Positions 16,921-60,875 of a stretch of 64,000 bases of DNA are shown here, piece by piece. The stretch comes from Lepidodermella squamata. Lineage: Eukaryota > Animalia > Gastrotricha. A model generated the notes under the pieces. The model had not been told where the DNA came from. It saw only the letters and a program-made list of their open reading frames with translations, and made no database searches. Location of the stretch: assembly GCA_047495785.1 (NCBI GenBank), contig JBLDXI010000019.1:310001-374000 (forward strand). Direction: 5' to 3'. The number at the start of each line of letters is the position of its first letter. Position 1 is the first letter of the stretch. The position numbers were made by a program, and so were the translations under genes.

Positions 16921-18624
16921 ATGCTTAACCTGATACCAAAATGGCGAATTTTTTCAAAGGTGCCTACTCACCTTAAACCTTGCGTTACTCATTGCTCCGT
17001 ATTTCCGCACAAAGGAAGCACCGAAGTATTCTTTGTGGTTGATGTTAGGCTGGCTGAATCACCACCGGCTTCTCAAGACGTGACAACCGAAGTCTACCGA
17101 GCTTCTCTCCGCGTTGATGGGGTGACCAAAGTCGAGCAACTCCGTGGGAAAACTATTCGAAATATCATCGGACGATCTGATGTTATCCTTATCGTTACGG
17201 CGGATGAAGTTTTCGCAATGGGAGCGAATCGGTATGGCCAAATCGGAAATGGCGAGAAAAATGACATTATGGTCGAGGAGCCTTATCTTCTCCTAAACGC
17301 ACCTGTTGTCCAGGTTGATATCGGAAGCCACCACTGTGTCTGCCTGACCGAAGCTGGTGATGTCTACACCTGGGGCAGTAACACTGGCGGCCAGCTCGGC
17401 TATCAGGAGGAGAGCCTAGCACCGAAAAAGGTGACCTTCGAAAATCAAGAAATCAAATTTCGCCAAATCGCCTGCTGGGGTAATGTGACCTTCGCACTGA
17501 GTTTGGACGGTCGGTTGTTCTCATGGGGCGAGAATCGGTATTTCACCCTAATACCACAAACCCCACTCTACCAGCCAAGATTCCAGCCTCGGGAGGTTGC
17601 GTGTTTCCAGAACATCAGGATCAAACAATTTACCTGCGATGACGAGCGAGCTTTTGCGATCACTGAGTTTGGATCAGTTTACGCCTGGGGTAGGAATGAA
17701 TGTGGCAAACTTGGGCTAGGACACACTAATATCGTAGCTGAGCCTAGCCGATTGTTGACCTTTGACGACAACTACGCCAGGGTGGTTAAAATCAACATCG
17801 GCCCAGATTTCACGATAGCTGAAACTTCGCGAGGAATCTTCACCTGGGGCAGATTCCGAATTCAGGGCAAGTGCCGTTTTTCGAACTCTATGAAAAAGGA
17901 AGTTGAGACAGAAATTTCCTACCGCGAGAACCATTTTCCTGAGCTTTCGGCCGAAACCTCCCCATTGTCGATTTTGGTCAACGAAACAGACCGAACGCCT
18001 GGTTTAGTTTCCGTAGCCGATTTTAAGGTGGCTGAATCTATGTTCGAATCAGCACTGGATGACCCGAAAACGGCTGACTTCAAGGTTAAGCTCGACGACC
18101 GAGTCATCCACGTCCACAAGGCTATTCTCAGGTTCCGTTCAAGCCACTTCCGAACTATGTTTTCGAGCCAGGACTGGAAGGAGAGTCAAACTAACGAGCT
18201 CCCTATCGAACACACCCCATACAGCGTTTATCGAGCTTATTTGTTCTACCTTTACACGAACGAACTGCCGGAAGACCTCCAGATTGAGGATGCGTTCATG
18301 CTGCTAGATTTGGCTGGGTCTTATTTTGAGGATGAACTGAAGCTTCTAACGTAGGTATTTACCCTCAAGTGTTGTGTAAACAATCGTTTTTTACTATACA
18401 GGTGTGACTTCATTCTTGAGCGATCCCTTAACGTGGACGATGTGCTGCAAACCTATGCGTTGGCGAGCAATCACAAGGCTGAACATGTGGCCAGCCGATG
18501 CTTGGACTACATCTTGGAGCATCTAGCCCAACTAGTGAAATCAGAGGCTTTCGATAAACTCGACGCTGTTCATGCTAAGGAAATTTTCCTAAACGCTGCT
18601 AAGGCTGAACTACTCAAAAAATGA
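16921..18624 (+). CDS. RCC1-repeat and BTB domain protein (RCBTB-like)
   Basis: RCC1 repeats (GANRYGQIG, YTWGSNTGGQLG, FSWGEN, YAWGRNECGKLGLG) and BTB (ADFKVKL..IHVHKAIL..RSSHFRTMF..WKES..FYLYT). An intron from about 18351 to 18401 joins a BACK-like exon. Confidence 0.9.
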
Positions 18625-31900: not shown

Positions 31901-33216
31901 TATAACTCTGGTATAAACTTAAAAAATTGATACACGTAAGGATTCATGATGTGGGCCATAGGCTTTTTGTCATCCTCTTGTTGGCAGATTTGTTGGCATT
32001 TGGATCCACATTTGGAATTCCCTGAGTAAAACGGTCGCGAACAGAAACAACGAGAAATTCAAATTTCGCACCGTTTCTTCCTTCTACATCTTCAGCTGAA
32101 TCCATTCCTATAAGTGACACCAGCTTTTCCGAATCGTTGGGAAACACCAGACCCAGAAAGAAAGCTGCGTGCTCAATGTGAAATTCGTCAGCATTTCATC
32201 AAGTTGAGAATAACATTAAGGTTTGCTTCTCCTAAAAATCGCACGGGGGATTTTGTTACCACTTTTTCGCCTCGGCTGTCAACCATCGAGCTCTTATTAG
32301 GTAAATTTACCGCACTCTAGACCCTAGACCTCTCGATTGCTGGAAATCGCAGCACTAAATTCCTTCTAGAGATTTTCGCCACAATTTTTCCTTCTCAATC
32401 TTTGCTGACTTATTGGTCTCTCACGACAACGGAAGCAAGGAATAACATTGTGACGCGAAAACCAGTCAGTATTTGGGCTGTAAATGTTAATGTAAATGTT
32501 AAATCTCAGTAAGAGCAGTATAATGCGCTTAGTTGAGCAAAAAATGGCGCGGGCTGATTTTTTGGAATAAAGTTCCATACACCATACAGATGAGTAACTT
32601 GTTACAAACGTCGTATGGCACGTCAAATGCAATAACGTGAAATGAAATCTTGAAGCGTGACCAAATTTCCTTAAAAGTGTAATAAACCGCTCACAAATGA
32701 GTCACACCCGGTCGCTGTAATATTCAACTTCCTATATCTATGAAAGGTTATAAAAAGAGCACAAAAAGCCAGAATGTCTTATTTTTCCATCCTCCCCGAT
32801 GGTGAATAAGACATATTACACTAAGACATACAGAGTTTAGCAAAACCAATAACAATATATCCCAATCTGTGTTCCGCATCTCATGGACGTGTACAATATG
32901 AAATCGATCGATGCAAGCGCGCGTGGTACTGTAACGCTTGAACCTTGGTCTAATTGAACTTTTCATAAACTCAAGGTTAGAAAGTTTTCTGCTGGTATCT
33001 TACTATCTGTGGTTGGAAACTCGTCTCAAATCTTTCATTACCACATGTATAATAATAACAGTAGAAACAAATAGACCTTATATCTTATAATTCTTTCTCA
33101 AATCTTTGTGTTGAAGTACAAGCAGTTGGGAACTAATTTGGGAAGTGTTTCTGTGTAACATTAGTTAACATTTCAAATATTTTCAAATCACATGTTTCCT
33201 CAAACCATGTAGGAAA

Positions 33217-33359
33217 ATGCATACAGCCTTAAATAGAAGCTCAAATGGAGAATCAAACATAACTGACCACCCGCCGATCTATTTTCAAGCAGTTCCACGT
33301 GTGCATAATTTTTCAACTGCTAATGGATTTAGGCCCGTTTATCCAAGGACGGTGGATAT
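33217..33359 (+). pseudogene. 5' part of a CD225/dispanin-like gene split by the 18.7-kb transposon
   Basis: MHTALNRSSNGESNITDHPPIYFQAV...YPRTVD(at|t)IAMQRY rejoins in frame with 52091-52655 once the element and one ATAT are removed. Confidence 0.9.
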
Positions 33360-33590
33360 CGTCGGCGCCGTGCAGTAATGTAGCTTAACCATGATATACG
33401 CACATTGGAAAATAAATTTTCTTATTTTGACGAATTTTGCCTCGAAACCGGTGTCATACTGACCGCCTTGATGCGATGAGCAAGAATATATATAATTCGA
33501 AGCACTTCGAGCGTTCAGTGCCACGTTAAAGCTGTTTGAGCGGTTTTTCAGTCGGCGTACTATTATTATTATTAGTGTGCGCATATGTAT
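33360..33590 (+). repeat. Left terminal inverted repeat
   Basis: Reverse complement of about 51855-52086; first mismatch at 33429. Confidence 0.95.
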
Positions 33591-34001
33591 GTTGTTGTGC
33601 ATGATGCGCTTATTAAAGCATGGGCGGGCAGGCGACATAACTTTTATGGAAATTCGTTGTTATTTTGCGTTGCATTGTGCGTAACAGGTAGCTCCGATAA
33701 CTACAAATTTATTGAGACTTGACGTAAAATACGAGAAGAATAATAAAATTCCCCTGAAAATGTTGTTCTCAAGTGCCTGCTATCTAAGATTTTCTTCACC
33801 GTTTATCATCGTTGACCAGAAGCCGCTCAAAGACACAACAACAACAACGCATTTAATGAATGCATGTTTTCATTAAAACACAACAAATAATTTATTTCAA
33901 TTTCTGCACAATAATAATAATAATAATATAATTGAAACCATTAAAACAAGAGGTAAAACTATATATTATATATAATACGAGGATAACACCAATACCAAAA
34001 T

Positions 34002-36615
34002 TCAAAGCCTGTCGACAAGCTCTTCTTCGTCTGCCATATCCACGTCATCGGCTGTCCATTCGTTGTCTTTATATTTTTCTCGAATCAGGGCTAGCCGATT
34101 TTCATATGCCCGGCGTTTCTCCTCTGAAGAAATGTCACATGGTAGAGCCTTGAAGTAATCAAGCATTCGCGGTGGAATAACACCATCCGCAATCCAAGAC
34201 AGCAAATCCATCTTTTTATCAAACGTGAGGTTTCGCGGCCCAGTGTACACTTTTTCAGGTTCAGCTGTCATGATAAAATAACAAATAAAATAACGAGCAG
34301 AGAAGGCAAGTTATTATTATCTACCTACCGTTATCATAACCAAATGGACCTTTATTCTTCACAGGAGTGAGGTGTACATCAAAACGTATCTTTTCGTCCT
34401 CATCCTTGTCTGTCAGCATTCGCTGGTCTGGAGTTAGCGGGCCTGTGCCATCTGTAGCTATATCGACATAGCTTTTTCTGGCCCACAGTTCATGCTCTCC
34501 GATTTTAATCTTGAACCGATAAAATTGATATTCGGTAATGCGAAATTTGCTGCTGTTTTGTAGAGTTGTCCAATAATTGGGCTTTCGGCGAAAATCAGAG
34601 AAGAAACTCCAGTCAAGTTCCACGACTTGAAATTTCTCCTTTTCATTTCCTTGTCGAGCACTTTTGATAATTTCGCGCCACTCAGCAGGGTCGGTAACGG
34701 AGCCAAATCTTCTCTGGGACTTTTCTATGCAGCTATGCATTGCGTCGACTGTCATTGTAGTGTGTCCTGAAACGCCATAAATAGTTCAAAATTGTCGGTA
34801 GTTTCCCATCGACTAAAAACATACCAGGAACTAGAAAGAGCCAATCAACAAAGCGTAGCCTTTCCTTGCCTTGTTGAACACGCTCGAAGTTGACTTTTCT
34901 GAGCGTATGATAAATTGCGTTGGGAATGAAGCTAAACAATAAAAATCTGATTAATGATACAAAAAAATCTTCATCAATAATTAAACTAACCGATTCTTTC
35001 CAGCTCCAACTGTCGAATCGGAGACAATTGTCAATTCCACAATATCGTCAGCGAGATGCTTCTTAATATAATCGTGCAGAATAGACCCAATTTCAGCGGC
35101 ACCCAGAGATCCTGAAAAGATAAAAGTTGGCCAGTTTCAAGACAAAAAGAATTATTTTTTCCAACAAATTTCTACCATTAAATTCTTCAAACAAGTAATT
35201 GAATGTGGTCCGCTCAGTGAGGTCAAAAATCGTAAAATTGGTTGTTATCAGCTTCCGCTTGTAGGGAAAAGCGCAGCAAGGAGTGCGCAATTTTGACTGA
35301 GCATCAACCTTGAATGAAACGATGTTCATAAATCAAGAATTGTCAAATTAAAGCATCACCTCAATTATTGCGCTTTTCCGTCCAGCAAAACCTGGCTGCC
35401 TTGATGCTTCCGCTCTTTCACGCCGCAAACGCCGAAATTCTCGGCTTGCGTCCTTTTCATTGAGATGCTGCTGGTGCTTGGCACGATTACGATTTTTTTG
35501 CGCATCCGTCATGTTATTCCACCGTGCGCATACCTAAGAAAATGAAATATAAAATCGAGAAAGCAGAAATTTGTGCAAAATCTTTTCATTACTTTGCACT
35601 TGTCATTTCTGGGTTGTTGGAACGAGACAGATCTGTATATTATAATAATGCAAATGATGCTTTCAGAAAACGGCGGCAAGTTGCATATATTATGCACTCA
35701 CCTGAAATGGGTACGGAATAGCGTTCGGAATGACTCAAAATTGCATCGGCGAACGCCAAGCTGAGGTGCAGACCGTATGTTAGCCACCCAGTCGCTGTAG
35801 AGACTTCCAATTGTAATGCTTGTTGATACGTAAAATCTCTTTGAAATTTTTCTTCGATAATGGCTTAGTTTTCTGTATTATATTTATGAAAAAAATAACC
35901 AATCATTTACATTTTCATAATAGAACTTGCCAGAAACTTACGCTTTTAAGCGCGGTTTCACAAAATTGATAACAGAATTTCTCGTCAACTCGTTCAAGGT
36001 ATTTCTGCCCCCTTCTTTCTTCGCACGCCGAAAGTCCGGATAAACAGTCAACTGGTCGGGACTAAGCTTGTTCTCCAAAGTGTAAGACACAAAGCGATTC
36101 GTAACATCCAAGGCAGACTCGAAAAACCTGCGACAAACAGTAATCCGCTGAATTTTTGCCGCTTTCCCTCGGAATTTCTCCGTAGCATAAATTGCAGGTA
36201 GTGTGTAGGTAATTCTACTTCGAAACTTGACAAAATCCTTTGAGACAAATCTCCCAACAAACTGACGTTGGTCAAAGATGGACCCAGTCGACCTAAACTG
36301 TTGACTCAGTTCTGCTATTTTCACGTCCGTGTATTTTTCCCAACATCGCTTTTCTTTGCAGCAGTTCAACAGCCGCTTGCCCTCGCGTTTCCGAACGACA
36401 GATAACTTTCGTTTCTTTCGCAGCTCGCCAGTATCTCGGTCTTTAGCAACAATTTCCCTCCTCACGTATGATTCTCCAGAATTTCTCATTCGCTTCTCCT
36501 CATCGACCCAAGCTGTTTTTACTCGCCGAATCGGTTTCTTTAATTTATCATTGGGAAACACGGGGATTTCCAAATCAGCGACCTTAGTCGCAGCCGATGT
36601 TGATGGAAGGCTCAT
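34002..36615 (-). CDS. Sola1-type DDD transposase (multi-exon)
   Basis: Spliced motifs: VCRRFFESALDV; LSHYRRK..FYV...SLYSDW; SFQQPRNDKC; VDAQSKLRTP..YKRKL..NFTIFDL..NYLFEE; EIGSILHDY; TIVSDSTVGAGKNR; FLVPGHTTMTVDAMHSCIEK..PAEWREIIKSAR; KKMDLL..IP..YFKALP. All three candidate catalytic Asp residues are present. Confidence 0.85.
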
Positions 36616-36745
36616 AATAATCAGTTAAATCGCCAATATTTTAAGGTTTTTGCTACAGCATTTGAAATAACCAAGATGTATCATTAAATGAATCGAATGA
36701 TCAAGAAATATTATGCAGATATGAGCAGAATAATTTAAAAAAATT

Positions 36746-37096
36746 CTACAAGCTATCTTCAGGTAGCTCGATTGTGTCAATTATACGCCCGTCAAGTCGG
36801 TATATGTGCAGCCGTTCCAAACCTCGCCGACTTCGGCTAATTACATTTTGGAGCCAGCGTATCACCTTCTGGAACTTGAATCCCAGAATAGCGACACCAA
36901 CAATGGCGATGACCGATAGGACAACTGAAACTATAATCAAAACGTCAGTTTTCGGCGTATCGCTAGCGTGCGTGGTGGAAGTAGTAATGGAGGTGCCTGT
37001 CGTAGAAGTCGTGTCGCAGAATACACAACTGCTGGCACTTAATTCAAGGCGGCATTTTATTACAGCATCCTCGCTAAACGGGACACAATCGGCCAT
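36746..37096 (-). CDS. Small single-pass membrane protein (Cys motif, Thr stalk, TM, basic tail); cargo family member 1
   Basis: 116 aa; C-x10-CRL-x6-CxxC, Thr-rich stalk, ~23-aa TM, RSRR, YRL. Confidence 0.7.
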   Translation of the reverse strand: MADCVPFSEDAVIKCRLELSASSCVFCDTTSTTGTSITTSTTHASDTPKTDVLIIVSVVLSVIAIVGVAILGFKFQKVIRWLQNVISRSRRGLERLHIYRLDGRIIDTIELPEDSL

Positions 37097-37295
37097 AATA
37101 ATAATTTTTTAATTTCTAAAAGGAAACAGGCAGGAATTTTATCGATAGATCATTTAATACCGAATGAAATAATAAAATTAACATTATATACTGCGGCAAA
37201 TAACATGGCAAGTAATATGGCAAGATTATAATATTATGGCAATACTTTATTATATGGCAAGATACAAGATACAAAGTAATAAACTAAGAATAATA

Positions 37296-37634
37296 TTATG
37301 CCGTAACTTCGGCATTCCCCTCGGCATTCCCCTCGGCCTCTTCGTTAGAGGCGAACAAGCAAAGCGGAAGGCTTTGCTCAAGCCGAGAATAACGCCTTCG
37401 ACGGCGAATATATACGACAGAAATGATAACAACGATAACAATGATAACAATGATAATGATCCCCGCTGAGATCAGACCAATTTCCAGCTTAGACAATCCC
37501 GTCTCAGCTGGAGAAGGCGGCAAGGGGTTTGAGGTTGTAACCGAGCTCGTTGTTGATGGCGGACATATGTTGCAGTCGACATGCAACAATCGACATCGCT
37601 CATAGGCTTCAGCGGACGGTGGAATGCAAGTCAT
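37296..37634 (-). CDS. Small single-pass membrane protein; cargo family member 2
   Basis: 112 aa; C-x10-CRL..CxxC, Ser/Thr/Pro stalk, Ile/Val TM, RRRRRYSRL, LCLFASNE. Confidence 0.75.
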   Translation of the reverse strand: MTCIPPSAEAYERCRLLHVDCNICPPSTTSSVTTSNPLPPSPAETGLSKLEIGLISAGIIIIVIIVIVVIISVVYIRRRRRYSRLEQSLPLCLFASNEEAEGNAEGNAEVTA

Positions 37635-38557
37635 TTAATAAAAATTGAACACTAAAATTTAATAAATGCAATTATTTAACACAAATTTGATTCGATTCGA
37701 TAAATTTAAATATGCAAGCAATTTCAATTTTTCGTAAATCACGATCACTCAGTCCATTCGATTTTCTAGTCCCTCGCATTCTCCAAGTGCACACTTTTCG
37801 GCCCTTACATTTTTCTATAGAAGCTATTTTTCTATAAATTCTTAAGCTCCAAATTGAGCTGGGTTCCGTCCGCTATTTCAATCTTTGAGAAGTGTATGCG
37901 TATTCACGGCCGTTGTTCTCGCATGTTATAAATCAACTGCGCGAACTTATTCCATTTTCAAAAATGCGGAAACAATTCTACCATCAAAATTGCATACAAA
38001 AGCATATCCAGACCTGTGATGCTTGTCACATGGAATCGATTTTTCGTTTAGAGAATCGAAACCTTGGCAAACTCCTGGCAAGCTGAACTACTGAACTTCT
38101 CGTAGCCGGACGAAAAGGACGAAGCTGACGCGTAATATGCAGACGCGTTTTGGACGAAGCTACTGACTGGACTACTAAAAATTCCGAAGTCCGGCCGAAG
38201 TCAGGACTTGGAATAGTCTGGCCTGGTTCTCCACATGACAGTTGTCATGAAACGCGACAGTTGTCGAAGCAGTTGAGGAATTCAAGCGGGGCTTTATAAG
38301 CGCAAAGAAAAGACGTTTTCTCCACATCAGCCGCTAATGTTTTCGCGCATCACTGGCCCCGGTGAAGAAATCTGAAAATTGGGCACAAATCCTGTAGTAT
38401 ATCGGATTGCGGAAATGTCTCCGATTGGCCATGGAAATTCCGTTTATCTAACACATCGAGTACATCTGAGTTTCTGAATTCGATTATACCGACTAATTTT
38501 TTTTTCTTTTCCAACACAATGAGGAAGACTAAATCAGACTAATACTGATACAAAAAC

Positions 38558-38790
38558 CAAGCTCGCCTTTTACGGCATGTGTGACTATCAGTCAGACTTG
38601 AACAGGAACTCTCTTCTTGATTCGATGAAGCGTGGTGATTGAACCCAAGCTCGCATTTTACGCTCTCTGTGACTATCAATTTGACTAGAACAGGAACTCC
38701 CTTCTTGATTCGATGAAGCGCGGTGATTGCACCCAAGCTCGCATTTTACGCTCTGTGCGATTTTCAATTTGACTAGTAGAACAGGAACTC
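38558..38790. repeat. Tandem repeat, ~88-bp unit, about 2.7 copies
   Basis: CAAGCTCGC recurs at about 38558, 38646 and 38734 with conserved GAACAGGAACTC..TTCTTGATTCGATGAAGCG. Confidence 0.85.
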
Positions 38791-38899
38791 CCAGGAGTTG
38801 AACATGACTTGAACATGAACTTCGTGATTTCATGCTCATGATTTCGATAAAAACGAGAGAGAGAGAGAGATTTCATCTCTGTTGACTCAGGTAACCAAA

Positions 38900-39173
38900 G
38901 TTTACAATTGCAGGGGAAGTAGCAGTGGAAGTTGAAACGACAAAAACGACCAATAGATTTTTCGTCAGTTTTCGGCGTATCGGCAGCGGGTGTGGTGGGT
39001 GTTGTGGTAGAAACCAGGCTAGAAGTCAGGCTAGGCGAGGTTACTGCGCCGGACGTGGTGGAAACACCAGGCTCTGTGATGGGAGTCGCCCCATTGCAGA
39101 AATTATCACAGTTGTCTCACAATTCAAGGCGGCATTTTACCAGGTCGTCAAAACTAAATGACACGCAAGGCAT
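38900..39173 (-). pseudogene. Disrupted cargo family member 3 (paralog of 36746-37096)
   Basis: MPCVSFSFDDLVKCRLEL*DNCDNFC...TTPTTPAADTPKTD; in-frame TGA and loss of frame before the TM segment. Confidence 0.7.
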
Positions 39174-39390
39174 TTGAGAATGTAATACGAGATTGGATGT
39201 AATATCTAAAAAAACGAAAATAATTCAATTATTTATGGTTTAATAATATTTATAATAATATTTCAATAATATATATCATTTTTTGCACGAATTAAGGAAC
39301 AATCAATTCTTCGAAAAATTATTGTTAAGTTACAGGCAAGTAACAGGCAAGGCCATAAAAAACTAGGTAAAAACAAAGTCGATGTTTTGA

Positions 39391-39729
39391 TCAGGCTGTT
39401 ACAGCATTCTCATCGGCAGCGCCTTGTTCGTTCGACGCGAACAAGCACAATTGAATTGTAGATTGATGATGTTGATCGATAGGGGCATAACGACGCCTGC
39501 GCCGACAAATGACGATTACAGCCCCTGTCGCGGCCACGACTGCTAACAAAAGCACTACCCCCCCGCATATTAGACCAATCAACATCGGGGTTGAAAGGCC
39601 AGGCGGCACATTGTTGGCTGGCGACGTTGTCGGGTTAAAGGCGGGGCATAGACCCGAACAATCGAGATTGAATAAACGGCAACGTTCAATCTCCTCAATC
39701 GTTGCCTCCCGACAAGTCGTTGTGGCCAT
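39391..39729 (-). CDS. Small single-pass membrane protein; cargo family member 4
   Basis: MATTTCREATIEEIERCRLFNLDCSGLCP..., TM, CRRRRRYAPI, LCLFASNE..VTA; paralog of 37296-37634. Confidence 0.75.
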   Translation of the reverse strand: MATTTCREATIEEIERCRLFNLDCSGLCPAFNPTTSPANNVPPGLSTPMLIGLICGGVVLLLAVVAATGAVIVICRRRRRYAPIDQHHQSTIQLCLFASNEQGAADENAVTA

Positions 39730-40272
39730 AAATATTCTCAAAAAATTAATCGACTAAAGTTAGAATAAATTTAAATAGCTGAAATGCACATCACACTTTT
39801 TAACGGAGTTGTTTAACGGTTTAATTGTTGGTTAATGTGCGGAAAACGGAGAAATAAACAAAGAAGCAATAAGAAATATAAGAAAACTTTTATAAAAAAT
39901 ACTTTCTAGCTTATACAATATTATTTTATTGTGAGATGAGATCGGTATAATATTTATAATATACAGTGAAAGTTGTCTAAACCGGAAGTTTTTGAGTCCA
40001 AAAGTGTGGACTTCATTCTCAACCGGTCTGGTGGTATAAACCTGACGGAGTTTGGGAGTCTGGAATTCGCAACCCGAGCGACCCGAGCGGCCCGAGCGCG
40101 GCCCGAGCGCGACCCGAGTCCGATTTAGACGACTTGCACTGTAGTTGTTTTCGGTTTTATAGGTAACGCAAGAACATTGAGAAAGTCCAAAGATTGCATG
40201 CAAAAAATATTGCGGGACCTTCATCATAATGGCATTATAAATCATATTCATGTGAGATTATAATAATGTTCG

Positions 40273-41774
40273 TCATTGCACATCATTTGCCTGGGCGGAC
40301 GGCTGGGCTTCCTGTCTAACTACATATAAATTAACTCCGGTTAGAAATGCCATAAATTGACGAAGATGGGTTATCCTAGCAACTACGGTTGCCATATTAG
40401 CGGTAGCAAAATTGCGCAAGGCAGTTAGCTGTTCAGCGGTATATTGTATACTTTGATACTCAAATTCTGCTTCAGAAATATAAGGAAAAGCAATGAGTCT
40501 GGTAGGCGGCGTATCTATTCTGCCTTCTCCTGCAAGACCTACAGCTACCACGCTGGGAACTTGTTCAGTCTCTACAGCTGTAGGGGCTTTAGATTTGGGG
40601 CTAGCGCCAACTATCGCATCGTCAAGACCATTCCCAACTACGGCAACTCCAGGGCCAGTCTCCACGGATTTTTTTCCAGTTATTAGGGCTAGGCTCATAT
40701 AAATTGTATTCTTTAAGCTGGAATAAACTAAAAAGGTAAAACTTGGCACGAAAAATAACGCTGTATGTTGTGGCTTGAATGAGGTTCCGTAATATATTAA
40801 AAAAAAGCCCGTTATGATCAAAACAACGTTTATCGCCATTTTCGGCCTACTCGAGACCAAAGGACCGTTTATCCAAGAAATAACAAACGCAGAGCAAGAA
40901 CACAAAAATATTAAGGCGTATAAAATATTATGTGCATTATCAATCGTATAATTTAGGTATTCAAAAGAGGCATATGATCCAGCGATAAATGACAGCAACA
41001 CATAGGCAACAGGCCTTTTAGTATTGTACAATTGTGATATAAAATAAAACGCAGCAGCTATCCCCGCTAAACTTCCGCTCATCGAACAAAAACTATAATA
41101 AGCTAGATTCGTTTCAGTTAGCCATTTCGATGCTACAACCATTAGAACACCTGTTAGCGTGACAATGAAATTATTAAAATCAAAATAACTTTCAGCCAAT
41201 TGCAGATCGACAGTCGAATTCAAGGGGCATATAGCAATGCTGTAGTAATCAAAGGCCGACACAAGCGCCGTCTCGAAGGCATCTTTATCGTCCTCGTCTG
41301 ATGCATCAAATAAGCTTGGTAGAAATAGTGACATAATCTGAAGAATGCCGGGCGAACGACGGTTTGCAGTTACTGCACAGCATCTAGCAGCGAGCTTTTC
41401 AGAGCAATCGTTGCCAGTATAAATCTCCAATTTAGCCACATCTTGTATTGATGCTGGTATTATTCGGTACTGGCATAAAGTTTTTCATTAAATATCCAAA
41501 AGGCAAACCAAAACCTTACCTTGTTTATCCAAAATAAATAATTAAGTTGCCATAATTCCGACTTAGTTAAGCACACTTGAGAAGGGATCGGCGGCGAATA
41601 GTCTGAAAAGGAAATCTGGTATGCCCCATCCTCAACGAGGGCCCACGGCGGAACACTAATTTCTTCGAAATTTTCGCAGTTGTTGGTTGTTAAACAGAAT
41701 GCCTCAGATAGAATTGCTGAGCTCCAAATTATCGTTAGAACATTAAACTCTGCGTGAAATTTGCGGTATGCCAT
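40273..41774 (-). CDS. NEMP/TMEM194-like nuclear envelope integral membrane protein
   Basis: Signal-like N-terminus (MAYRKF..), one intron (about 41517-41470), about 5 TMs with NEMP-type motifs: YYSFCSMSGSLAG..FYFISQL, GPLVSSR..INVVL..GFFLIYYG, and ISEAEFEYQSIQYTAEQLTALRNF..VVARITHLRQFMAFLTG (compare NEMP1 LTEEEY..QGEVETRKALEELREF..VSRIQSPKRFADFVEG). Confidence 0.75.
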
Positions 41775-42147
41775 ACGATAAATAAAACTGACTAAAATGT
41801 GAGAGAAATTTAGAAAATTAAACATTTATTTCTTAGTTGTGGGTAGCTATAATTATCAAATAATAGATCACACTTGTATTTTATTATAATTGACAGTGAA
41901 TTTACATTCTTAGAAGGCGTGCAAAAAGGAAAAATGAAGATGATAACCACAAAATAATAATTAATTGGCTAGATTCGCGCACAAGAGTTAAAGGACTACT
42001 AATAAAACGCAATATTTTGCAATATCAAATATCAATATCAATTATCAATAAAAAGCCAGAGGCGGAGATTTCCTTAGGTTACCTACAACATGCTAGAGTT
42101 CCTTGCTAAAGAGTTCCTTGTTGCTGGTTAAAGTAGCAAGATCTATA

Positions 42148-43821
42148 CTATCGAAATGGCCGAAAGCGATTGATCAAAGGCTGAATAATACTTGAACGAC
42201 TTTCTTCGCTCTTAGATGACGATTCATTGTTGCCCACGTCACGTTTTTCTTCGGCAATGACACGACTGCTTTCGCTATGGACGATTCTTCTTCCAGATCG
42301 CAAGACAGACGAAGATGGATCGGAGGCTAGTCTGCTACTTGTTTCAGTAGTTTTCAAATTAACTATGGGCTCAATTTTATTAGTAGCAATAACCTCACGG
42401 TCTGAATCGTTTGTCACACCACCACCACCACCATCTTCTCTATTCATGTATTTCTCAATCATGCGCGCAACAGCCAAAAAAGATAAGATGTAAATGAGAG
42501 ATAAATACCACATCAGAGGTCGGTTAAGATATAGCTCGCTCACATATAAATAACGCAGCGATAGAGCGACAAATTGGGTTACTATGACCGTGTCATAAAT
42601 CTTTATCTCGGTTGCATAGCTTGTTACAACTAATTCCAAGGCACCGCAGACCGCCAGTAGCATTAGTTGCATTAGTAGCCTGTTTCGCATAGAATCTGAT
42701 CCCGAGTAGTAATATTGGTATAATAGATACAAAGCTACCACGATGTAGAAATAGCACTGATAGGCTGAAAAATTCGGACTTCTGATGATAAAAATTGAAA
42801 TCTAAGACAATTAAAGTCAAAATTATGATCATCGTTTGCCAGAAACGTACCTGAGCTAAAACTTCCCGGACCAGGGTGGATTTTTTCGCAAAATATTCAA
42901 GCGTGGATTGAATAGGGGTATAAGCCAGAGAAATGGCCCTGACTAAACTTGGTATCCAGTTTGTGAACATTTCTCTCACCGGAACGGAAACACTGAGATC
43001 CCATAGCGTTTGAGTAAGCCACACCTTCGAATAGCTACGCAGCATGCAGCTTGTGTCCTCAGCGAAGTCGATAAAGTAAGCTATGGATATCTGAGAATAA
43101 ATCAAATGAGCAAACTGCTCTGGAAAAATGCTTATTACATACCAATCCAGGGAGTAAGTTTCCAGTATTCTTCTCGTCAAAGGCCTTTTAATAGAAATTC
43201 ATCAAATTGAAAGATTAAGCAATTAAATAACCTTCATACAAGCCAAAATATCAGCTCCCTCTTTGCAGGCAGTTTCATAAGAGGGATTGATACATACAAG
43301 AATCCGGAAAGTGTAGGATTTCTAACAATAAAATTCACTTGAGTTAACTCATGTTCACAGAATAATTTGCTCACCAAATCATCTGCAGTGAGAGGAAATG
43401 TTTTTTTGACAACCTCCTTCATATCTTTGATGATCTGAGTCATGAAAACGAACCCAATGATGTTTAAGTCAGGTTAAAGGGCTCACCTTATCTCCACAGT
43501 CTCGTTTATCTTTGCCCGTTTTTACAGCCATAAGTTTTCCAAGATAGTAATGCCCCTCTTTAGAGAAAAACATGTTTTTTAGCGATCAATGTTCGAAAAT
43601 GAATCCAAATACTTACCCCAAATGTAAGCTACTGTCTCACACTCGGTATTTACTGGCCCGGTAAAAAACCCATCCGTCACATTTTCCCAGTCGATATCTG
43701 GCGCATCAGCAAGAGGGTTCTCCAAAACAGGAGATAGTTTCACCGTGCGTTTTTCAATTTTTCCATTGACATGAGCATAGATGGCGATAATTGTTATCAG
43801 ATAATATGTCGTAGCATTCAT
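42148..43821 (-). CDS. Brambleberry/GEX1/Kar5-like nuclear membrane fusion protein (multi-exon, shortened)
   Basis: Signal peptide. Splicing out ~50-bp introns (e.g. 43374-43322, 43231-43185, 43142-43091) gives KRDCGDKIIKDMKE..LTADDLKSYTFRILVCINPSYETACKEGADILACMKAFD..ISIAYFIDFAEDTSCMLRS (Cys-rich domain), then TMs YFYIVVALYLL..RNRLLMQLMLLAVCGALE and a Ser/Arg-rich tail. Confidence 0.6.
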
Positions 43822-44034
43822 TTTGCAACAAGGAGTCGAAAAAATGAACGCAAGACGAAGCGCGCCAAAAGTGGATGATTGACAAAGGAAGCTTTTGTTC
43901 TGTCAAGGCCCTTATTAGAGAATAAAAATCTGGTAAAATGTAATTTTACATTCATAACTTGAAAGATTTTGATATTCATTTTGAAAGAGAAATTATAAAC
44001 TTCAAGATTAAAAAGCTTCTAAAAATGAATTGAT

Positions 44035-44300
44035 CCCTCGACAAGCTCACCATCTCAGCTTTCGATTTCGTGCTGCTAGCAAGTGGAATGACTTACCGCC
44101 ATCGATAAGATCTTCCGAAAACCCGAAGATCCTCAGAGATGAACTCCTGAAAGTATTACTGAAAGCAGAATACGTGGACGATTTCGTCTACACAAAGAAG
44201 AGGTAACTCGCCACCTTACCTCGACGCGCCCATCTGCGTCCGTTGGATGGAAGACCGCCTTAGTGCGAATCCAACGTACATACATACATACATACATACA
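44035..44300 (+). mobile_element. 3' end of a CR1/L2-like LINE with (TACA)n tail
   Basis: SFRFRAASKWNDLPPSIRSS ORF2 C-terminal motif, 3' UTR and TACA repeats; second copy at 49402. Confidence 0.75.
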
Positions 44301-44302
44301 TG

Positions 44303-44530
44303 ATGGGTCGAAGTTCAACTACTGCGACGCCGTCATCGATCAAGGTTGCAAGACCCAGCTGGATCGTCTTCAACACGCGCAAAACGAAGCCGTTCGTGCC
44401 GTTCTCGACGTCAGTCCTGATGAAGTTCTCCTGCGATTGCGATGGGTGAATGTGCCAGGCAAACGACTGGTCCACCCGGCTAAAACCATGTGGACGTGCA
44501 GCAGGGATCCTGAGACCCCGAGGCACGAGG
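44303..44530 (+). mobile_element. LINE ORF2 C-terminal fragment
   Basis: FNYCDAVIDQG..LDRLQHAQNEAVR..LRW..GKRLVH, homologous to LNYCDTVLDQA..VQNRVMR..LGW..GKRKVH in the 58-kb LINE. Confidence 0.75.
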
Positions 44531-44899
44531 CACCCTCGTCGCTAGTCAAGCCGATGATAATACACTTTATTTTCTTATAGTTCTGGAAGTATAGTAGTGT
44601 CTTATAGTTCCGGCGTTAAATAATACTCTATTTTTGGCTCCGTGGAATTACCTCATGTAAATATTCTCTACTTTTGTAAATCATTCTCCAAATAAGTCTT
44701 CTGGTAGCTTTCTTGCTACGACGGCGTTTGTAGGCTTCGCTGAGTGAGTGGAAAAGCCACTGATTATAGGCTGTTGTGGCGCCCTCCAACTTTCCTGATT
44801 TTGTTGCTGATTTTTTTGCTAATGCTTTTTGCGCACGGCTTCTTTGCGCCTGTCACATCTTCTTAGTTTCTAGGGATGATTAATACTACTTAAATCGAA

Positions 44900-45705
44900 A
44901 TGCATGTAATCCAAGTAAAATTTGCTGCTGGTGCTTCAATTCTAGCTGCTAAGAAGTATATACAAGATAATTATCCAGAACTTCAATTCACCTATTCCAG
45001 AAAACTTGGTGAGAATCAGGACATGTGATATATCCGATTAATTATAATAAGTCTTTTTCAGGTTCTGGAAGACGTTCTTTTTATTTTCGCTGTAGGGGGT
45101 ATGGGAGGTTCTTAGCCGAAACAACGAGTGAGAAGTGTCGATCTACGGCCTTATTGACGATTTATGATAACGGAGAAATGATATTCCAACGCTCTGCTAA
45201 TAGCCATCCAACTCATCCATTACCATACCAAATCTCTCGAATGTCAGTTGGCAGTAAGGCGTTTATAGAAGAAAACTTCAGGCTAAAAACAGCTTCGAAA
45301 ATACACGAAGAGTTGTCAGCCATGAATGAAAACAACCCGTTCTTAACGACTCCAAGCCTTGATCGGATTCAGGATTTCATAAGGCAGCTGCTACATCGAG
45401 ACCTAGGCTCCTTCAATAGGCGCCGTCCAGCGTCATCAAACGTTCTTCAAAATTTCACCAAACGGTCATGTCGGCATTTTCCTGTATCTATCTCAAAAAA
45501 GTTGAAATATCAATGGCCTTGCGGAGCCTGTCTCTCAGATCTTAGCCACCCTAATTCGCGAAAAGAACAATTGTCTATTGAGTGCTCTTGTTGCCATATG
45601 TATTTTCACAAAACTTGTTCATTGCTGACCAATCGCGAGTTCTCGCAATTTCAGTCAATCGTAAAGCTGAAGTGGTTTTGCTGTTATTGTAACCCGAAAA
45701 CTTGA
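44900..45705 (+). CDS. WRKY/GCM1-type (MULE/FAR1-like) Zn finger plus C-terminal PHD finger protein
   Basis: Two exons. FYFRC..KC..NSHPTHP; PHD C4HC3 pattern CGAC..IECSCCHMYFHKTC..KWFCCYC. Confidence 0.7.
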
Positions 45706-46578
45706 TTATTTTTTTGCTCTACCTAAACGTTAGATTTATGCGCTGTTCCAGAGCATTCATTATTATAATATTTTAGAACAATAATTACAGTGTTGAAATT
45801 ATATAGTTATGTTATGTTAAAATTATAGTGTTGATGAAGTGTTGAGGAGAAAGTTATGAATAAATTCACTGTTTGCAGCTAGAAAGGTTCATTTTCTTGT
45901 TCGATAATGATGGGATGACTCAGACGGCTCCGTGGGAGAACTTATTTTTCGATTTGAATTTGATGTTCGCATTGCCAAAATGAATAGAACGATCAGTGCC
46001 AATATTTGAAAGATGGCACACTTTAGTGAACCGATCGACAGCTCATGTTAAGAACTTGACTTGAACAATCGCGCGGGTCATTTTCATGAGGAAAATTTGA
46101 CTTTCCCGCGCATATTATATGGCATGTTATTGCGGCATATATGGTACATCCTGTGGCAGCAAAGTCGCCGATTCTCGAATGAAAAACAATGAAAAGATCA
46201 ATTATCAAATTACCAAATCGTACTATTTATTGACTAAATATTATTCATATTCCAAATATTTGACTAAATATTCAATTTGAGCAATTTGATGTAAGGTATG
46301 AGCCAAAACAGTGTCAAGCAATAACAGGAGTAGTAAGAGTACTCTAACAACAACTAACTCGTAACTCGTAACAGCAAGAGTTTTGATTCGAAGCAGTAAC
46401 AAAAATACGAGCAAGAGTCAAAAAGATGAAAAAATATCAAATTAGGGCAGGCACGACGAAAAAGGCACGAAGGAAAAGGCAGTCACGAAGACGAAGGAAG
46501 AAGATGAAAAAGTTGTATAACAGGCGTAAGAGTTATAATCGTTGCGAAACAACTAGGCGACATATTATGATATTATTC

Positions 46579-46732
46579 ATTTGTGACGTGGCAAGCGATT
46601 TCGGCCCTATCTCTATCTTCACAGGCATTTGAAAAGGCAACAGCTGACGCATAATCATTATTGCGCAACACCCAATTTTCAAATGACTGCGAAGATAGAG
46701 ATAGGGCCGAAATCGCTTGCCACGTCTCATTT
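46579..46732. repeat. ~55-bp-arm inverted repeat (small MITE/hairpin)
   Basis: GACGTGGCAAGCGATTTCGGCCCTATCTCTATCTTC versus GAAGATAGAGATAGGGCCGAAATCGCTTGCCACGTC. Confidence 0.85.
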
Positions 46733-47134
46733 GAGCAGTTATATTTTGTAGTATTTATTTATCCGCATCACGGTAAGTAAGAGTCGAAACCGGTCAAAAA
46801 CAATAGTTTTTCAGGCGCGAGTATCAAATGATCAAGAGTTAAAACCATCGAAAAATAAGAAATAATAAGCAAACGCAGCGTTTTTTAACGCTGAAGAATG
46901 CGAAGAATGCTGAAGATTTATTAACGCAGCGAGTAAGAAGAAAAATAAGAAATAAGAAGAAGATGATCGTTCAAAAAATCGAAAATCTACAATCAAAAAT
47001 AAGATCGAGGAGCAAATCAATTTTTGAAACTGAGCAGCATGCTCAACTTTATGAATGTCGCAGCAATTTAATTGACAAATCTAATGGTTCTATGACTGAA
47101 GAGCACGCGATCTGAGAGCAAAGATCAAACCAAT

Positions 47135-49003
47135 CTAATTGCCCTCTGCGCAAGGTGGTTTAACTGTCACAGTGTTTTGACAGTTAAACCACCTTACGCA
47201 GAAGCACGCCGGGCTACAACGCCGGTTATTTTTGCGGCAGCCGCACTGGGCTAAACAGCCGGTTTTGCAGTAGCAACGAACGGCTGTAGCGTCCTGCATG
47301 TTTTTCTGGTCGGTCGGAGCAGTCGAACCAGCCGGAGCAGTCGAACCAGCCGGAGCAGTCGAACCAGCCGGAGCATGATCAGACTCTGAACCTGATAAGT
47401 CGGGTCGACATTCCGGTAAAGATGAAGTTGAAGATGATGAAGATGAAGATGGTGGCAGCGCAGCATTAGTAGGGTCTATAAAACCAATTCAGACTTTAAA
47501 ACAAAATTAACAAGCATAACAAATCGTTGATACCGTTGTTTCCAGTGAGCGAGCGAGCCGTTGGGGTAGAGAACAAATTTGTATCGACCGAAACCTCCTC
47601 TCCTGTAAAAATATATAAATTATAAAAACAGGGTGTAAAATATTGTTAACTAACCAGGCGTTAGATGGAAATTGGGCGGATGTAACTGAGCATGTAACTG
47701 AGCCAGCCGCTGCTGCTCAGCGGTAATCGCATTTTCGATGGCATGTAGAAGGCCCATCGCCTCGGCAACTTGCGCCTCTGCAGCAGCGACCCGTGCTTCG
47801 GCAGCCGCAGCTCGCGCATTGGCAACCTCCGCACGGGCCTCTGCCGCGCGAGCGTAATGTACAGCTTCATGCGTAGCCGCCTCTTGGCGGGCACGCTGTT
47901 CTTCCGCCATGTGAAAGAGCCGCATGGCATTAGCGGCGCGGAGTTCAGCGGCATTCGCATCGGCATCGCAGACCCGAGCATGCTTCACGGGGACACGAGG
48001 AGTTGGCCCAATCTCAGAAGATCCTAGGTAAAACAATGTTAGCCAAATGAAATGTGTGATAATCAAATCAAAACCTGGCACTTGAGGATGATCAGGCTCC
48101 TTAAATTCGCAAGATTCTGCAAAAACGAATAATCATGATAATTACGATTTCGGGTTTCAGCTTTTACCAATGTTTTCATCCGGTGAGCTGGCACCAGCAA
48201 CAGATTGCCCAGCATCTTTTAAGTCTTTCAGGTGAGCGAACGCACGCCGAAACGGCGTTGCTACACTATCAAGCAACGGCGAAACCGCGCCGCGAATCGT
48301 TTCTAGAGTTGAAAAAAATATTACAAGAATCTAGCAACTAAAACAAACAAACCAATGTCAACGCTAACAAAGGCGCGCTCTCGGAGGCAGCCTGAAGTAG
48401 AAAGCATGAATAAAAAAAAATAAGCAAATTAATTACAGCTTACCGACGATTCGAGCACGTAGAGCTCTGGTTTTTGTAAATATGTACAGGCAACAGCAGC
48501 AAATTACGATAGCGCCGGTTACGCTGGTGACGGCGATTATCGCTATGTAGAAATACTGATGCTCCTGAAAATACAAATAAACTCCAAATAAATACAATAC
48601 AAATAATGTAAAATCATATGTCCTACGAGGACTTTTTGCAAATGGGTGTAAAAATCGGTCACGCAGAAATTAAATTCGCTAAACAAGAAATTCATGGCTT
48701 TACAGTATTATGTAACAGATGAATGGAAAAGGCTCAATTGAAGGAAACAGTATCAAAAGTTGTTTAATGCATGATCAAGAGCATTCGAAATGGTAACAAA
48801 AATAAAAAAATGTAAATGAAACCTACAAGCGTTGTGCTGTTGGAGTTGTGCTGTTCCCTGCTGATGACCACACCGCTGATGGTCAAATCGTCTGATTGCC
48901 GCTGATGGCCGCTGATGGCCACACCGTCGTTGACCACGCCATCGTTGGCGAGAGCACGCGATCCAACGGCCGGCGGCAAAACACCACGGAAAAATTCAGC
49001 CAT
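47135..49003 (-). CDS. Multi-exon transmembrane + coiled-coil + Tesmin/TSO1-like CXC domain protein
   Basis: A chain of mostly phase-1 GT-AG introns links the TM (YFYIAIIAVTSVTGAIVICCCCLYIF), an Ala/Glu coiled coil, a Ser run, (AGSTAP)x3 and a C-terminal CYCKTGCLAQCGCRKNNRRCSPACFC..NCQN. The start may instead be the ATG at about 48695. Confidence 0.75.
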
Positions 49004-49401
49004 TACAACAAAAGTACAAAAGTACAAAAGTACAAAAGTACAAAAATCAAATGAAAAACCTATGCAATAAAAGCCATATTGTTGGAAAAATAACTTATTT
49101 TAACCAATAGAAAATTTCAGATTATTCAGATTTCAGACTACAAAGACTTTTCCACGCAAGTATGCTTCGCAAGATCAAGTTGATGAAAGTGAAAGAAGGC
49201 AAGCTTGCTAGCACGTTTTTTTTTGCTCGGCGATCGGTCGTGCTAGGCTGGCCGTCGGCGTGCTAGGCTGTGCTTTTTTCATTATTCAATTAATTTTAGC
49301 ATTATAATATAACGTAATTAAAAAATTCTTGTTTATTTTATTTCATTTGAAAACCAAGAACGTCTTTTGGCGGGTTATTTTCAAGTTTTAGGAGTTTCGC
49401 T

Positions 49402-49571
49402 AACTCCTGAAAGTACTGCTGAAAGCAGAATACGTGGACGATTTCGTCTACACAAAGAAGAGGTAACTCGCCACCTTACCTCGACGCGCCCATCTGCGTC
49501 CGTTGGATGGAAGACCGCCTTAGTGCGAATCCAACGCTAATATACATACATACATACATACATACATACAT
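49402..49571 (+). mobile_element. Second, shorter copy of the (TACA)n-tailed LINE 3' end
   Basis: Near-identical to 44142-44300. Confidence 0.85.
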
Positions 49572-49914
49572 TTCAACAAAAAAGTCTCAGTTGACGTCGT
49601 CGAACGAAACAAAATAATAAAGAAGTCTCTCTCATTGCATTCATGCGTGGGAAATTTCATTTTCATTTTCGCCGAAGATTTGCCTCGAAATCGTTTTAAA
49701 GCTTTTATTTTGATTTAATTTGCAAGATCTGTTGTGAGACTTCGGCTTGTTCTTCACTACTTGTAGCAACTAGTAACTTGTGAACTATAACTAAATTTTC
49801 CATCTCCATCGCTTAACTTACTCGGAGAGGTTTGTCTTTAACCTCTAGATCCTGTAAAATGACCAAAAAATGACTAACCCATCAATGCATCCAAGTTCAT
49901 CCGTATGTTTAGGA

Positions 49915-50230
49915 CTGATAACAAGTTGATGCATCTGTTTTCTACTCGTAACAAGTTGACCTATTTGTTTTCTACTCGTAACAAATACTTATACTTTAAA
50001 CCATTAGTGTCCACTCGCGCGCAATGTTGAATCCTTTGAAAAGTTGTCATCACGAAGGCCCGGGAGGCTCTCTTACTGTCGAGACCAAGTCATCTTACAC
50101 TGGGCTTCTTGGAGCATCCTGTCAAGTGTTAAACTGCGACTCCAATATTTGTTTTCTACTCGTAACAAATAGGCACATCTGTTTTCTACTCGTAACAAAC
50201 TGGCCCGATTGTTTTCTACTTGTGACAAGT
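49915..50230 (+). repeat. Dispersed short direct repeats GTTTTCTACTCGTAACAA
   Basis: Five recognisable copies at about 49937, 49967, 50150, 50181 and 50211. Confidence 0.7.
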
Positions 50231-50498
50231 GGAGTTTTCAGCAAATTTCGCACAAACTTGACATCAATCAAACAACTTCCATCAAAGCCCCGCTAGTGGT
50301 TTAGGGCTGACTTCGTGATTTGGGTAACAGACAGTCAGTTGCCAGTTTTTACTGTTCAAATGAGCATCATTGCTTTGACCGTTCTCATAATTTACGTAGG
50401 ATTTCAGCTGCTAACGTTTGCTGAGTTTCTCTGTTGCCTGTTTACTGCTGAATTTAGTATGATACAAATAATTTTCTATTGAATAGTAAAGTTTAACG

Positions 50499-51094
50499 AT
50501 GATTAATCTTACTAATAGTTGGATTTTGGCGGTTTTTATGTTGGAGACGATATCGGGATCACCGCCTTGTCTTGAGCCCACTGGCAAGTTTTTTTGCCAG
50601 TTTTTGCTAGAAAAATCTTACAGCAATGATTTTACAGATGCCAATATCATATGGTGCGCCAAGTCTGGCAGTTGCAGAGTATGTCGCAGTCTCATTGAAT
50701 CGACAACAATAACAACAACAACATCAACAACTTCCACAACAGCAACAGACAAAACAAAGACCCCGCCAACAAACGCACAGACCCTGTCAGTGTCCTATCT
50801 AACGAACAGCGTGCTGAACATTTCGAAAGACTGCTCACAGATTTTACCGGTTTGTTCTGAATGTACCTGAGTTTAATCACGAAGTTTAACCATTTTTCTC
50901 TGTCCCACCAGGATAATAATATTACCGACGCTTATTCGGTCATTCTTTGGGTTCTATTTGCTCTTGTCATCTTAGCGATTTGCATCTGGCTACTCCGATG
51001 CCGCTCAAGTAAGTTAAAGTTAACGCGTTTGATTTTCAAATTGTGATTGTTTTTATTCCAACATCAAGGGTCTGGCTATATGGCAACTGACTAA
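50499..51094 (+). CDS. Type I membrane protein with Cys motif and Thr-rich stalk (cargo)
   Basis: Signal peptide MINLTNSWILAVFMLETISG, C..CAKSGSCRVC, poly-Thr, a spliced TM exon YSVILWVLFALVILAICIWLL and a short tail. Confidence 0.6.
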
Positions 51095-51854
51095 AATGTT
51101 GATTGCGGCTGGATTAATAGCCAGTGGTTGCAAATAGCTAGCAAAAAACCTATCGAAATGAGCGATGACATCAACAATCAATCAATCAATCTTCATTTTC
51201 GTAAAAAAAACCTATTTATCCACTATCTTTTTGTAATTTTGTAGTGTCTCTTTTTACGCGAAATTTCTAGTCCGAAAGTGTCTCTTTTGCATTTGCATAT
51301 TATTATTATTGTAATAAATAATTATTTGTAAGAAAAGAATCGTTTTAAACCCTGAGTTTTGTTTTATTATCGCTGAATGATAATTTTATTTTATGCAAAA
51401 ATCTTGCTATTGACACCTTTCTGAAAACGATGCAATTTTGCGACTTTGATTCTCCCTCGGCTCATAGCTGCGCATTAAAATGATGTGTTGAGTTCATTCG
51501 GCGTTGCTGCAACAGCTAGGTTCGCTTCACAACAAACTCTCCGAGGGCTAGTACATGGCAATAACTTTTAGTTATGAATTGATTGATGGGAGAAGGCGAG
51601 GTGTATAAAAGTAATGTCGTTTTTATTGCACATCGGTTGCACTTGTCAAACGGTTGTTGAGATTACGAAACATTTATTTTTATCAGCAGAAGTTATTTAT
51701 GGGCGGATTTCAGAAAAAAACTAAGACATAAATATTTTTGAGATACCCTTTGAGATACCGAACCTTAACCCCAAGCCTAAAAGATATCAAAGCATTAATA
51801 AGAAAAAAGAACAACGGCGGGAAAAGATGCTACATGCGGCCATCATATATGCAT

Positions 51855-52086
51855 ATGCATTTGCACACACACTAATAATAATAACAGTACGCGGACGAAA
51901 AACCGCTCAAACGGCTTTAACGTGGCACTGGACGCTCGAAATGCCACAAATTTGACATATTCTTGCTCATCGCATCAATGCGGTCAGTATGACACCGGTT
52001 TCCAGGCAAAATTCGTTAAAATAAGAAAATTTATTTTCCAATGTGCGTATATCATGGTTAAGCTACATTACTGCACGGCGCCGACG
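51855..52086 (-). repeat. Right terminal inverted repeat
   Basis: Ends ...CTGCACGGCGCCGACG followed by ATAT. Confidence 0.95.
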
Positions 52087-52090
52087 ATAT

Positions 52091-52655
52091 TGCTATGCAA
52101 CGTTACCCCACAGCGGCGAGAATGAGTGGTGCATTTGTTGAGCCTAGGCCTGCCCATCCGACTTACTATCAAGCAGTTCCTCGTGTGCATAATATTTCCA
52201 CGGCTAGTGGCTTCGGGCCCGTTTATCCAAGGAGGGACGAAAATGCTATGCAAAGTTACCCTCCAGCGACGGGAATGAGGGGTGCGTCCTATGCCGAGCC
52301 TAAGCCTGCCCAACCGCAGGCTATTATCATCATGGCTCCACGAGTTTCATTCGATGAATCTACCAATCGTCTCAGGAAAGCAGCATGTTGGATGGCAATC
52401 ATTTCGCTGTTCCTGGGATGTTTGCCGCTGTCGATTCCTGCTTTTATATGCTATAGCAGGAAGAACAGAAGTCTTGAAGCTACTAGCAGAAAAGCAAGGG
52501 ATACCTACAAATGCTCGATAGTGACATCATCGATATCAATTGTCCTGGGCATTTCTATCACTGCAATTATTGTATGGCTGAGAGTAGTGGTCTACTCATC
52601 TTCATCGTCGCCTGGTACCAATCCTACTTATTACAATTCAGCTTCATTTGGCTGA
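52091..52655 (+). pseudogene. 3' part of the interrupted CD225/dispanin-like gene (still an open frame from ATG 52095)
   Basis: RLRKAACWMAIISLFLGCLPLSIPAFICY...YKCSIVTSSISIVLG; contains a second copy of the ~52-aa N-terminal repeat. Confidence 0.85.
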
Positions 52656-60749: not shown

Positions 60750-60875
60750 CTCGACAATGACTTGTATCGGGAGGATACAATTTTTCGGCCGGCGTTTCCT
60801 GTTTGGCACCGAGTCGGAGCAGCTTTGTGGTTTCTTGCCACACATGGTGAAATGCGTACCGTCGGTGAATTACCG
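60750..60875 (+). pseudogene. PIF/Harbinger transposase remnant (continuation)
   Basis: LDNDLYREDTIFRPAFPVWHRVGAALWFLATHGEMRTVGEL matches Harbinger L.R.DT..R.AI....RVA.AL..LAT; the catalytic part is missing. Confidence 0.7.

Follow-up and report, generated by a model that had tools for sequence, protein, structure and literature searches.

The locus at 43821-42148 on the minus strand of the window (the whole stretch of 64,000 nucleotides analysed here) raises an unusual question. A first-pass annotation, made from the letters alone, had read it as a cryptic, spliced and transposon-borne relative of the Kar5/GEX1/Brambleberry proteins. Is there a gene at all, what kind of protein does it encode, and does it travel with a mobile element?

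A spliced and expressed gene outside the ORF list

The gene is real, spliced and expressed. Seven exons on the minus strand, separated by six canonical GT..AG introns of (in order) 59, 52, 53, 47, 52 and 49 nt, join into a single open frame of 453 codons; the chance expectation for an open frame as long as this is about 4e-10. Exon 1 (43617-43821) begins with an ATG at 43821 and stays open, through a hydrophobic, signal-peptide-like N-terminus and Cys61, to a GTAAGT donor, and exon 2 (43487-43557; 71 nt, with Cys89) keeps the frame by canonical AG/GT borders. Both are predicted, without confirmation by RNA; the 60-nt exon 3 (43375-43434) has a 3′ end seen in RNA and a predicted 5′ border. The Cys-rich exon 4 (43232-43321), which contributes Cys122, Cys131 and Cys140, has both of its junctions in RNA, and its minus-strand translation is exactly the 30-residue peptide that the first-pass annotation had picked out. 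Because this exon lacks a start codon, it is missing from the mechanically made ORF list, which contains no entry in its frame; the earlier suspicion of a multi-exon gene lying outside the ORF track was thus correct. Exon 5 (43143-43184; 42 nt) is tied into the transcript by the RNA joints 43183>43231 and 43090>43143, and exon 6 (42851-43090; 80 codons, with Cys171 and a proline-interrupted lumenal stretch) has RNA joints on both sides. Exon 7 (42148-42801), reached by the joint 42801>42851, encodes four predicted helices and a Ser/Arg-rich tail and ends with the stop codon at 42150-42148. It is followed by a 3′ untranslated region (41907-42147), the far end of which is reached by a 1280-nt RNA contig. 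A second contig, running from 41936 to 41812, bridges this untranslated region, an AATAAA just past it (41885-41880) and the ATG at 41825 of the downstream gene described below.

Two public runs, X1 and X2, match the window in sequence, and both were mapped on 40000-45900 (5,901 letters). Of the sampled words, 0.96-0.97 occur in X2, which behaves like genomic DNA, and 0.56, roughly the exonic share, in X1, the sole RNA run with the gene. Its 1280-nt contig covers 41907-42801, skips 49 nt, covers 42851-43090, skips 52 nt, covers 43143-43183, skips 47 nt and continues with 43231/2-43322; the 12 loose letters past 43322 correspond, as reverse complement, to the final bases of exon 3. These skips, together with the loose letters, establish the exon junctions 3/4, 4/5, 5/6 and 6/7 as real. 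Since the junctions flank 43321-43232, the Cys-rich stretch is a true exon and is retained in the transcript rather than spliced out. RNA depth (X1) is 17-28 over exons 4-7, whereas over exons 1-2 and the larger part of exon 3 there are only traces (depth 0-0.6) and no confirmed junctions. The RNA therefore bears out the proposed introns from exon 3 onwards; exons 1-2 and most of exon 3 are supported by the continuity of the frame, by splice signals and by a convincing N-terminus. A shorter product devoid of the signal peptide is conceivable, as the abundant RNA contig takes in no more than 12 nt of exon 3. An exon 7 acceptor at 42756, suggested by the sequence alone, was ruled out by the RNA, which places the acceptor at 42801 and makes 42850-42802 the last intron.

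Compared with the window, X2 carries one substitution at 43767 in exon 1, which changes Asn19 in the signal-peptide region to Asp, and a substitution plus a 1-nt insertion at 43358-43360 in intron 3; no other difference occurs over 3 kb. An E2F-like octamer, TTTGGCGC, lies at 43862-43869 on the minus strand, about 45 nt ahead of the ATG. Such octamers occur 16 times in the 64-kb window, counting both strands, and the single one upstream of the gene is weak evidence.

A predicted lumenal six-cysteine domain followed by membrane helices

The predicted protein starts with a short polar segment and a hydrophobic run ending in HVNG (residues 1-19), which is signal-peptide-like by heuristic reading of an exon devoid of RNA support. 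From residue 20 to about residue 248 the chain is hydrophilic and contains six lumenal cysteines, at positions 61, 89, 122, 131, 140 and 171, which probably form three disulfides. This lumenal domain of ~230 residues is spread over six exons of 14-80 codons. One N-x-S/T sequon (N47) lies within it and another (N246) directly before the first helix. The 77 residues between Cys171 and the first helix include prolines at positions 193, 203, 215 and 245, and nowhere in the lumenal part is a run free of proline and glycine longer than 37 residues, the maximum observed.

AlphaFold2, applied to exon 7 alone with no alignment, placed helices at residues 249-269, 274-302, 307-327 and 330-360, with disorder in the tail behind them. 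With a mean pLDDT of 56 and a pTM of 0.31, the model is of a quality too low for fold comparison, so only the secondary structure was taken from it. The third predicted helix (307-327) is weakly hydrophobic according to its hydropathy, and basic residues follow helices 1 and 4. Charges placed in this way speak for three membrane spans, the N-terminus lying in the lumen and helix 3 on the lumenal side. Given this topology, the C-terminal tail (93 residues, Ser/Arg-rich and predicted to be disordered) would face the cytoplasm or nucleoplasm.

Homology searches

Exons 1, 4, 6 and 7, scanned singly against Pfam, gave no match at E up to 1, and exon 7 gave none up to E 10, either to PF04163 (Tht1), to NEMP or to any other family. 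An exhaustive HMMER search (phmmer), in which exon 7 was compared with 1.84 billion representative proteins, produced no homologue; its sole match (P0001) is a bacterial YDG-repeat protein with a score inflated by 17 repeats, and we rejected it as spurious. In protein-atlas searches, exon 7 was matched with NIPA-like proteins (0.76) and exon 6 with unnamed bacterial clusters (0.81), both below the level reached by shuffled proteins. Nothing was found for exon 7 among viral contigs, tblastn revealed no paralogues of the gene within the window, and an Rfam scan of the window was empty. We use the term orphan in the sense of these single-exon searches, with exon 7 being the one exon searched exhaustively.

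How much weight do these blanks carry? The protein of a host RCC1-BTB gene, located outside the element at 16909-18354 on the plus strand, has a best database relative at 24% identity, and word searches with the NEMP-like and transposase-like ORFs described below were empty. The lineage thus seems to be barely represented in databases, which makes a blank from single-exon searches weak evidence.

A NEMP-family gene next door

The stop codon of the studied gene is separated by 322 nt from another gene on the same strand (40273-41825, minus strand), which has two exons and an intron at 41519-41470 and belongs to the NEMP family of nuclear-envelope membrane proteins. Its intron is seen in RNA, its spliced frame is open, and its large exon matches the Pfam family PF10225 (NEMP) with an E-value of 1.5e-13 and 51.4 bits, against a curated cut-off of 28.7. 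The match spans profile positions 2-162 of 249. Neither a word search nor metagenome contigs yielded a homologue of this NEMP-like ORF. RNA depth over the 5′ part of the gene is 18-25 (24.5 vs 27.8 for the studied gene), and the 3′ part at 40394-40787 has none. Between the two genes the RNA depth never falls to zero; their transcripts may overlap, or a single bicistronic RNA may contain both.

The two neighbours, which share strand and a similar RNA depth, also have a common plan. Like NEMP/TMEM194 (PF10225), the studied protein combines a signal peptide, a lumenal Cys-containing N-terminal domain, a helix bundle and a hydrophilic C-terminal tail. Yet there are four helices here and five in NEMP, and exon 7 has no match to the NEMP model. 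The idea that the studied gene is a tandem duplicate of its neighbour was discarded: the proteins are dissimilar, with a best BLASTP E-value of 3.1.

On balance, we consider it probable that the studied gene is an orphan cargo gene encoding a membrane glycoprotein of the endoplasmic reticulum or nuclear-envelope type, which works with the adjacent NEMP-like protein. It would be an expressed seven-exon cargo gene of the 18.7-kb cut-and-paste transposon of apparent Sola1 type that is described below, and its putative product would be a membrane protein of 453 residues for which no relatives can be detected. The layout envisaged comprises a cleavable signal peptide, a lumenal six-Cys domain of ~230 residues, three or four membrane helices and a disordered tail. 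The endoplasmic reticulum is continuous with the nuclear envelope. We infer that the protein enters the former and acts with the NEMP-like protein, the two genes being a linked module that a transposon family would carry along; both the localisation and the partnership are suggested by the adjacency of the genes.

Relationship to the Kar5/GEX1/Brambleberry family

The combination of signal peptide, membrane helices and an even cysteine count is generic, and a likeness at this level has to be judged in detail. Members of the Kar5/GEX1/Brambleberry family feature a signal peptide, an N-terminal Cys-rich domain, one to three lumenal coiled coils and two or three C-terminal membrane spans, and the six cysteines of the Cys-rich domain are conserved in every Kar5-family orthologue (PMC4291462, PMC7586128). 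Outside this domain sequence identity within the family is low (PMC7586128). Every described member has one to three coiled coils, which are essential in yeast (PMC4291462).

Might the gene encode a genuine member of this family that is compact and strongly diverged, a nuclear-envelope protein of nuclear membrane fusion that has lost its coiled coils? On the favourable side, the studied protein agrees in layout with the family: it has a predicted N-terminal signal peptide, exactly six lumenal cysteines near the N-terminus and three or four predicted C-terminal membrane helices. The last four gaps between the cysteines follow the order long, short, short, long in both the studied protein (32, 8, 8, 30) and yeast Kar5p (22, 13, 10, 24). 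If there are three membrane spans, the tail would be cytoplasmic, and GEX1, described with three C-terminal spans, would be the nearest in layout. The neighbouring gene belongs to a nuclear-envelope family, and the low identity outside the Cys-rich domain leaves room for a very divergent sequence.

Closer comparison tells against membership. The Pfam family PF04163, which represents the fungal branch of the Kar5/Tht1/GEX1/Brambleberry family, does not match exons 1, 4, 6 or 7. HMMER, run exhaustively with exon 7, and the two atlas searches are likewise empty, so that sequence, profile and language-model searches on single exons gave no Kar5/Tht1/GEX1 signal. The cysteines span residues 61-171 here and 56-141 in Kar5p, and all five gaps differ (27, 32, 8, 8 and 30 as opposed to 11, 22, 13, 10 and 24). 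The family consensus that the first-pass annotation had laid over the Cys-rich region finds no match on the spliced protein. Its three-cysteine core, given as C-x6-C-x6-C, is in reality C-x8-C-x8-C, and the family signature R..L.......LE, reported for the membrane region, is absent, the real spacing being R..L-x12-LE. Nor is an expected cysteine lost, as had been thought: the lumenal count is six once exons 1-2 are included. What did hold up is the absence of the long lumenal coiled coil. The corresponding region comprises 77 residues with four prolines, in contrast to 200-300 residues in family members, so the family coiled coils cannot be present. At the other end, the protein continues for 93 residues after its last helix, whereas Kar5p ends at the second membrane span. 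The studied gene also differs from the family in being carried by a transposon. The agreement in signal peptide, even number of cysteines and membrane helices, for its part, is of a very common kind.

Taken together, these comparisons lead us to regard a divergent, coil-less family member as unlikely. As far as can be read from the sequence, the likeness to Kar5/GEX1/Brambleberry seems to be one of layout only. Membership is unproven rather than refuted, as searches with single exons have little power and the cysteine count and the overall layout agree with the family. The further notion of a dominant-negative version is pure speculation.

Functional gene or decaying passenger

An orphan cargo gene with a role of its own also has to be weighed against a captured or decaying passenger that has no function and is transcribed through the activity of the element or by read-through together with neighbouring genes. 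A passenger of this kind would agree with the failure of the exhaustive HMMER search with exon 7 and of the atlas searches to find relatives, with the lack of RNA support for the 5′ exons, and with the presence, 240 nt upstream of the ATG, of a high-copy repeat having a DNA depth 5-10 times that of its flanks. It is difficult to square with a frame of 453 codons kept open by the precise splicing of six short introns (about 4e-10 by chance for a frame this long), with a coherent layout of signal peptide, lumenal domain, membrane helices and tail, and with an RNA depth similar to that of the Pfam-recognisable neighbour. We therefore consider a functionless passenger decidedly improbable and retain the orphan cargo gene as the preferred reading.

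The carrier transposon and its insertion site

Both the studied gene and the NEMP-like gene lie between two terminal inverted repeats, one on the left at 33356-33579 (plus strand, with ATAT at 33356-33359) and one on the right at 51868-52090 (minus strand, with ATAT at 52087-52090). The inverted ends are ~225 nt long and consist of one stretch of 194 nt (94%) and another of 35 nt (89%). When 33360-52090 is removed in silico and one ATAT is kept, the flanks join as one open frame. Across the join, a Pro/Tyr-rich unit of 52 residues is re-formed, which lines up residue by residue with the intact tandem unit after it. Because both the host frame and the 52-residue unit are restored, the 18.7 kb constitute a single insertion into a host gene. 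The inverted ends, the ATAT duplication and the restored frame thus bear out the earlier claim that the gene is transposon-borne. That an ordinary host gene merely sits between two independent, oppositely oriented copies of a small transposon is hardly credible: ATAT fits the Sola1 target preference, identical flanks could arise from separate insertions, and DNA depth over the gene is the same as in the rest of the stretch, but removal of 33360-52090 with one ATAT kept gives one open frame, and the join rebuilds a 52-residue unit, an outcome that two separate events 18 kb from each other could not produce.

Pfam and word searches with the transposase-like ORFs close to the left end (34002-36615, minus strand) were both empty; to our knowledge, Pfam has no Sola model. 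A 4-bp AWWT target is the hallmark of Sola1 (PMC3845634), and the ATAT target duplication together with the inverted ends fits it. Judged by its ends and target site, the element would be of the Sola1 type.

The DNA depth (X2) over the studied and NEMP-like genes is ~298, equal to that of the rest of 40000-45900. In two segments upstream of the studied gene, ~44062-44333 and 44531-44924, DNA depth rises to 5-10 times the surrounding level. RNA depth is present there as well, and the pattern suggests a high-copy repeat nested 240 nt from the gene. In the host gene interrupted by the element (33100-33359 and 52091-52655), tandem Pro/Tyr-rich units of 52 residues precede a membrane segment; the only Pfam match of this gene is to CD225, at E 0.38.

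Comparison with giant cargo-carrying transposons

Known giant eukaryotic transposons that carry cargo include Pack-MULEs, Teratorn, Polintons/Mavericks and Starships; the review that treats them does not mention Sola elements (PMC6431247). Like these giants, the present element is far larger than its transposase gene and has intact, expressed passengers, membrane proteins among them. It differs from them in the carrier, a terminal-inverted-repeat element with the Sola1 target hallmark, and in the cargo, which consists of intron-containing genes of cellular rather than viral type. The efficiency of cut-and-paste transposition falls above ~6 kb of cargo (PMC6431247), and the cargo here, ~14 kb, is well over that limit. 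What emerges is a cut-and-paste transposon of ~18.7 kb with several intron-containing, expressed genes of cellular type, one of them recognisably NEMP. Cargo of such size and kind is unusual for elements with terminal inverted repeats, and we found no report of it for Sola1.

What the finding means depends on the identity of the studied protein. If it is an orphan, it marks a pair of membrane proteins maintained by a selfish element and offers a lead on how such an element may handle the nuclear envelope. If it is a relative of Kar5/GEX1/Brambleberry, the element would provide the first mobile example of a family linked with the fusion of nuclei in sexual reproduction, and a minimal version without the coiled coils, indispensable in yeast, would bear on the mechanism of the whole family. 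A transposon-borne nuclear-fusion protein is thus a possibility, not a result. We give little credence to the most far-reaching proposal, in which a giant Sola1-type transposon family would possess its own nuclear-envelope module, made up of a NEMP homologue and a minimal, coiled-coil-less protein of the Kar5/GEX1/Brambleberry type, and would act on the nuclear envelope through it. Were it true, the fusion of pronuclei or karyomeres in the germ line or the early embryo would be one conceivable occasion for such action.

Other features of the element and the window

Several further features were noted. Three small ORFs on the minus strand of the element (36746-37096, 37296-37634 and 39391-39741) resemble paralogues: all three combine a Cys motif at the N-terminus with a stretch rich in Thr, Ser and Pro and a single membrane span, and those at 37296-37634 and 39391-39741 end in a basic RRRRRY stop-transfer sequence. 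Their Pfam matches to single-pass glycoproteins are at noise level only. A putative PHD reader at 45025-45705 (plus strand) has no Pfam match at E up to 1, and the short ORF at 47135-47299 (minus strand) shows a CXC-like cysteine pattern. At 46577-46734 there is an inverted repeat of 59 nt with 92% complementarity and a 40-nt spacer, which represents a hairpin or a miniature element. Outside the element, a reverse-transcriptase ORF of 919 codons (58084-60843, minus strand) matches RVT_1 with an E-value of 1.8e-35.
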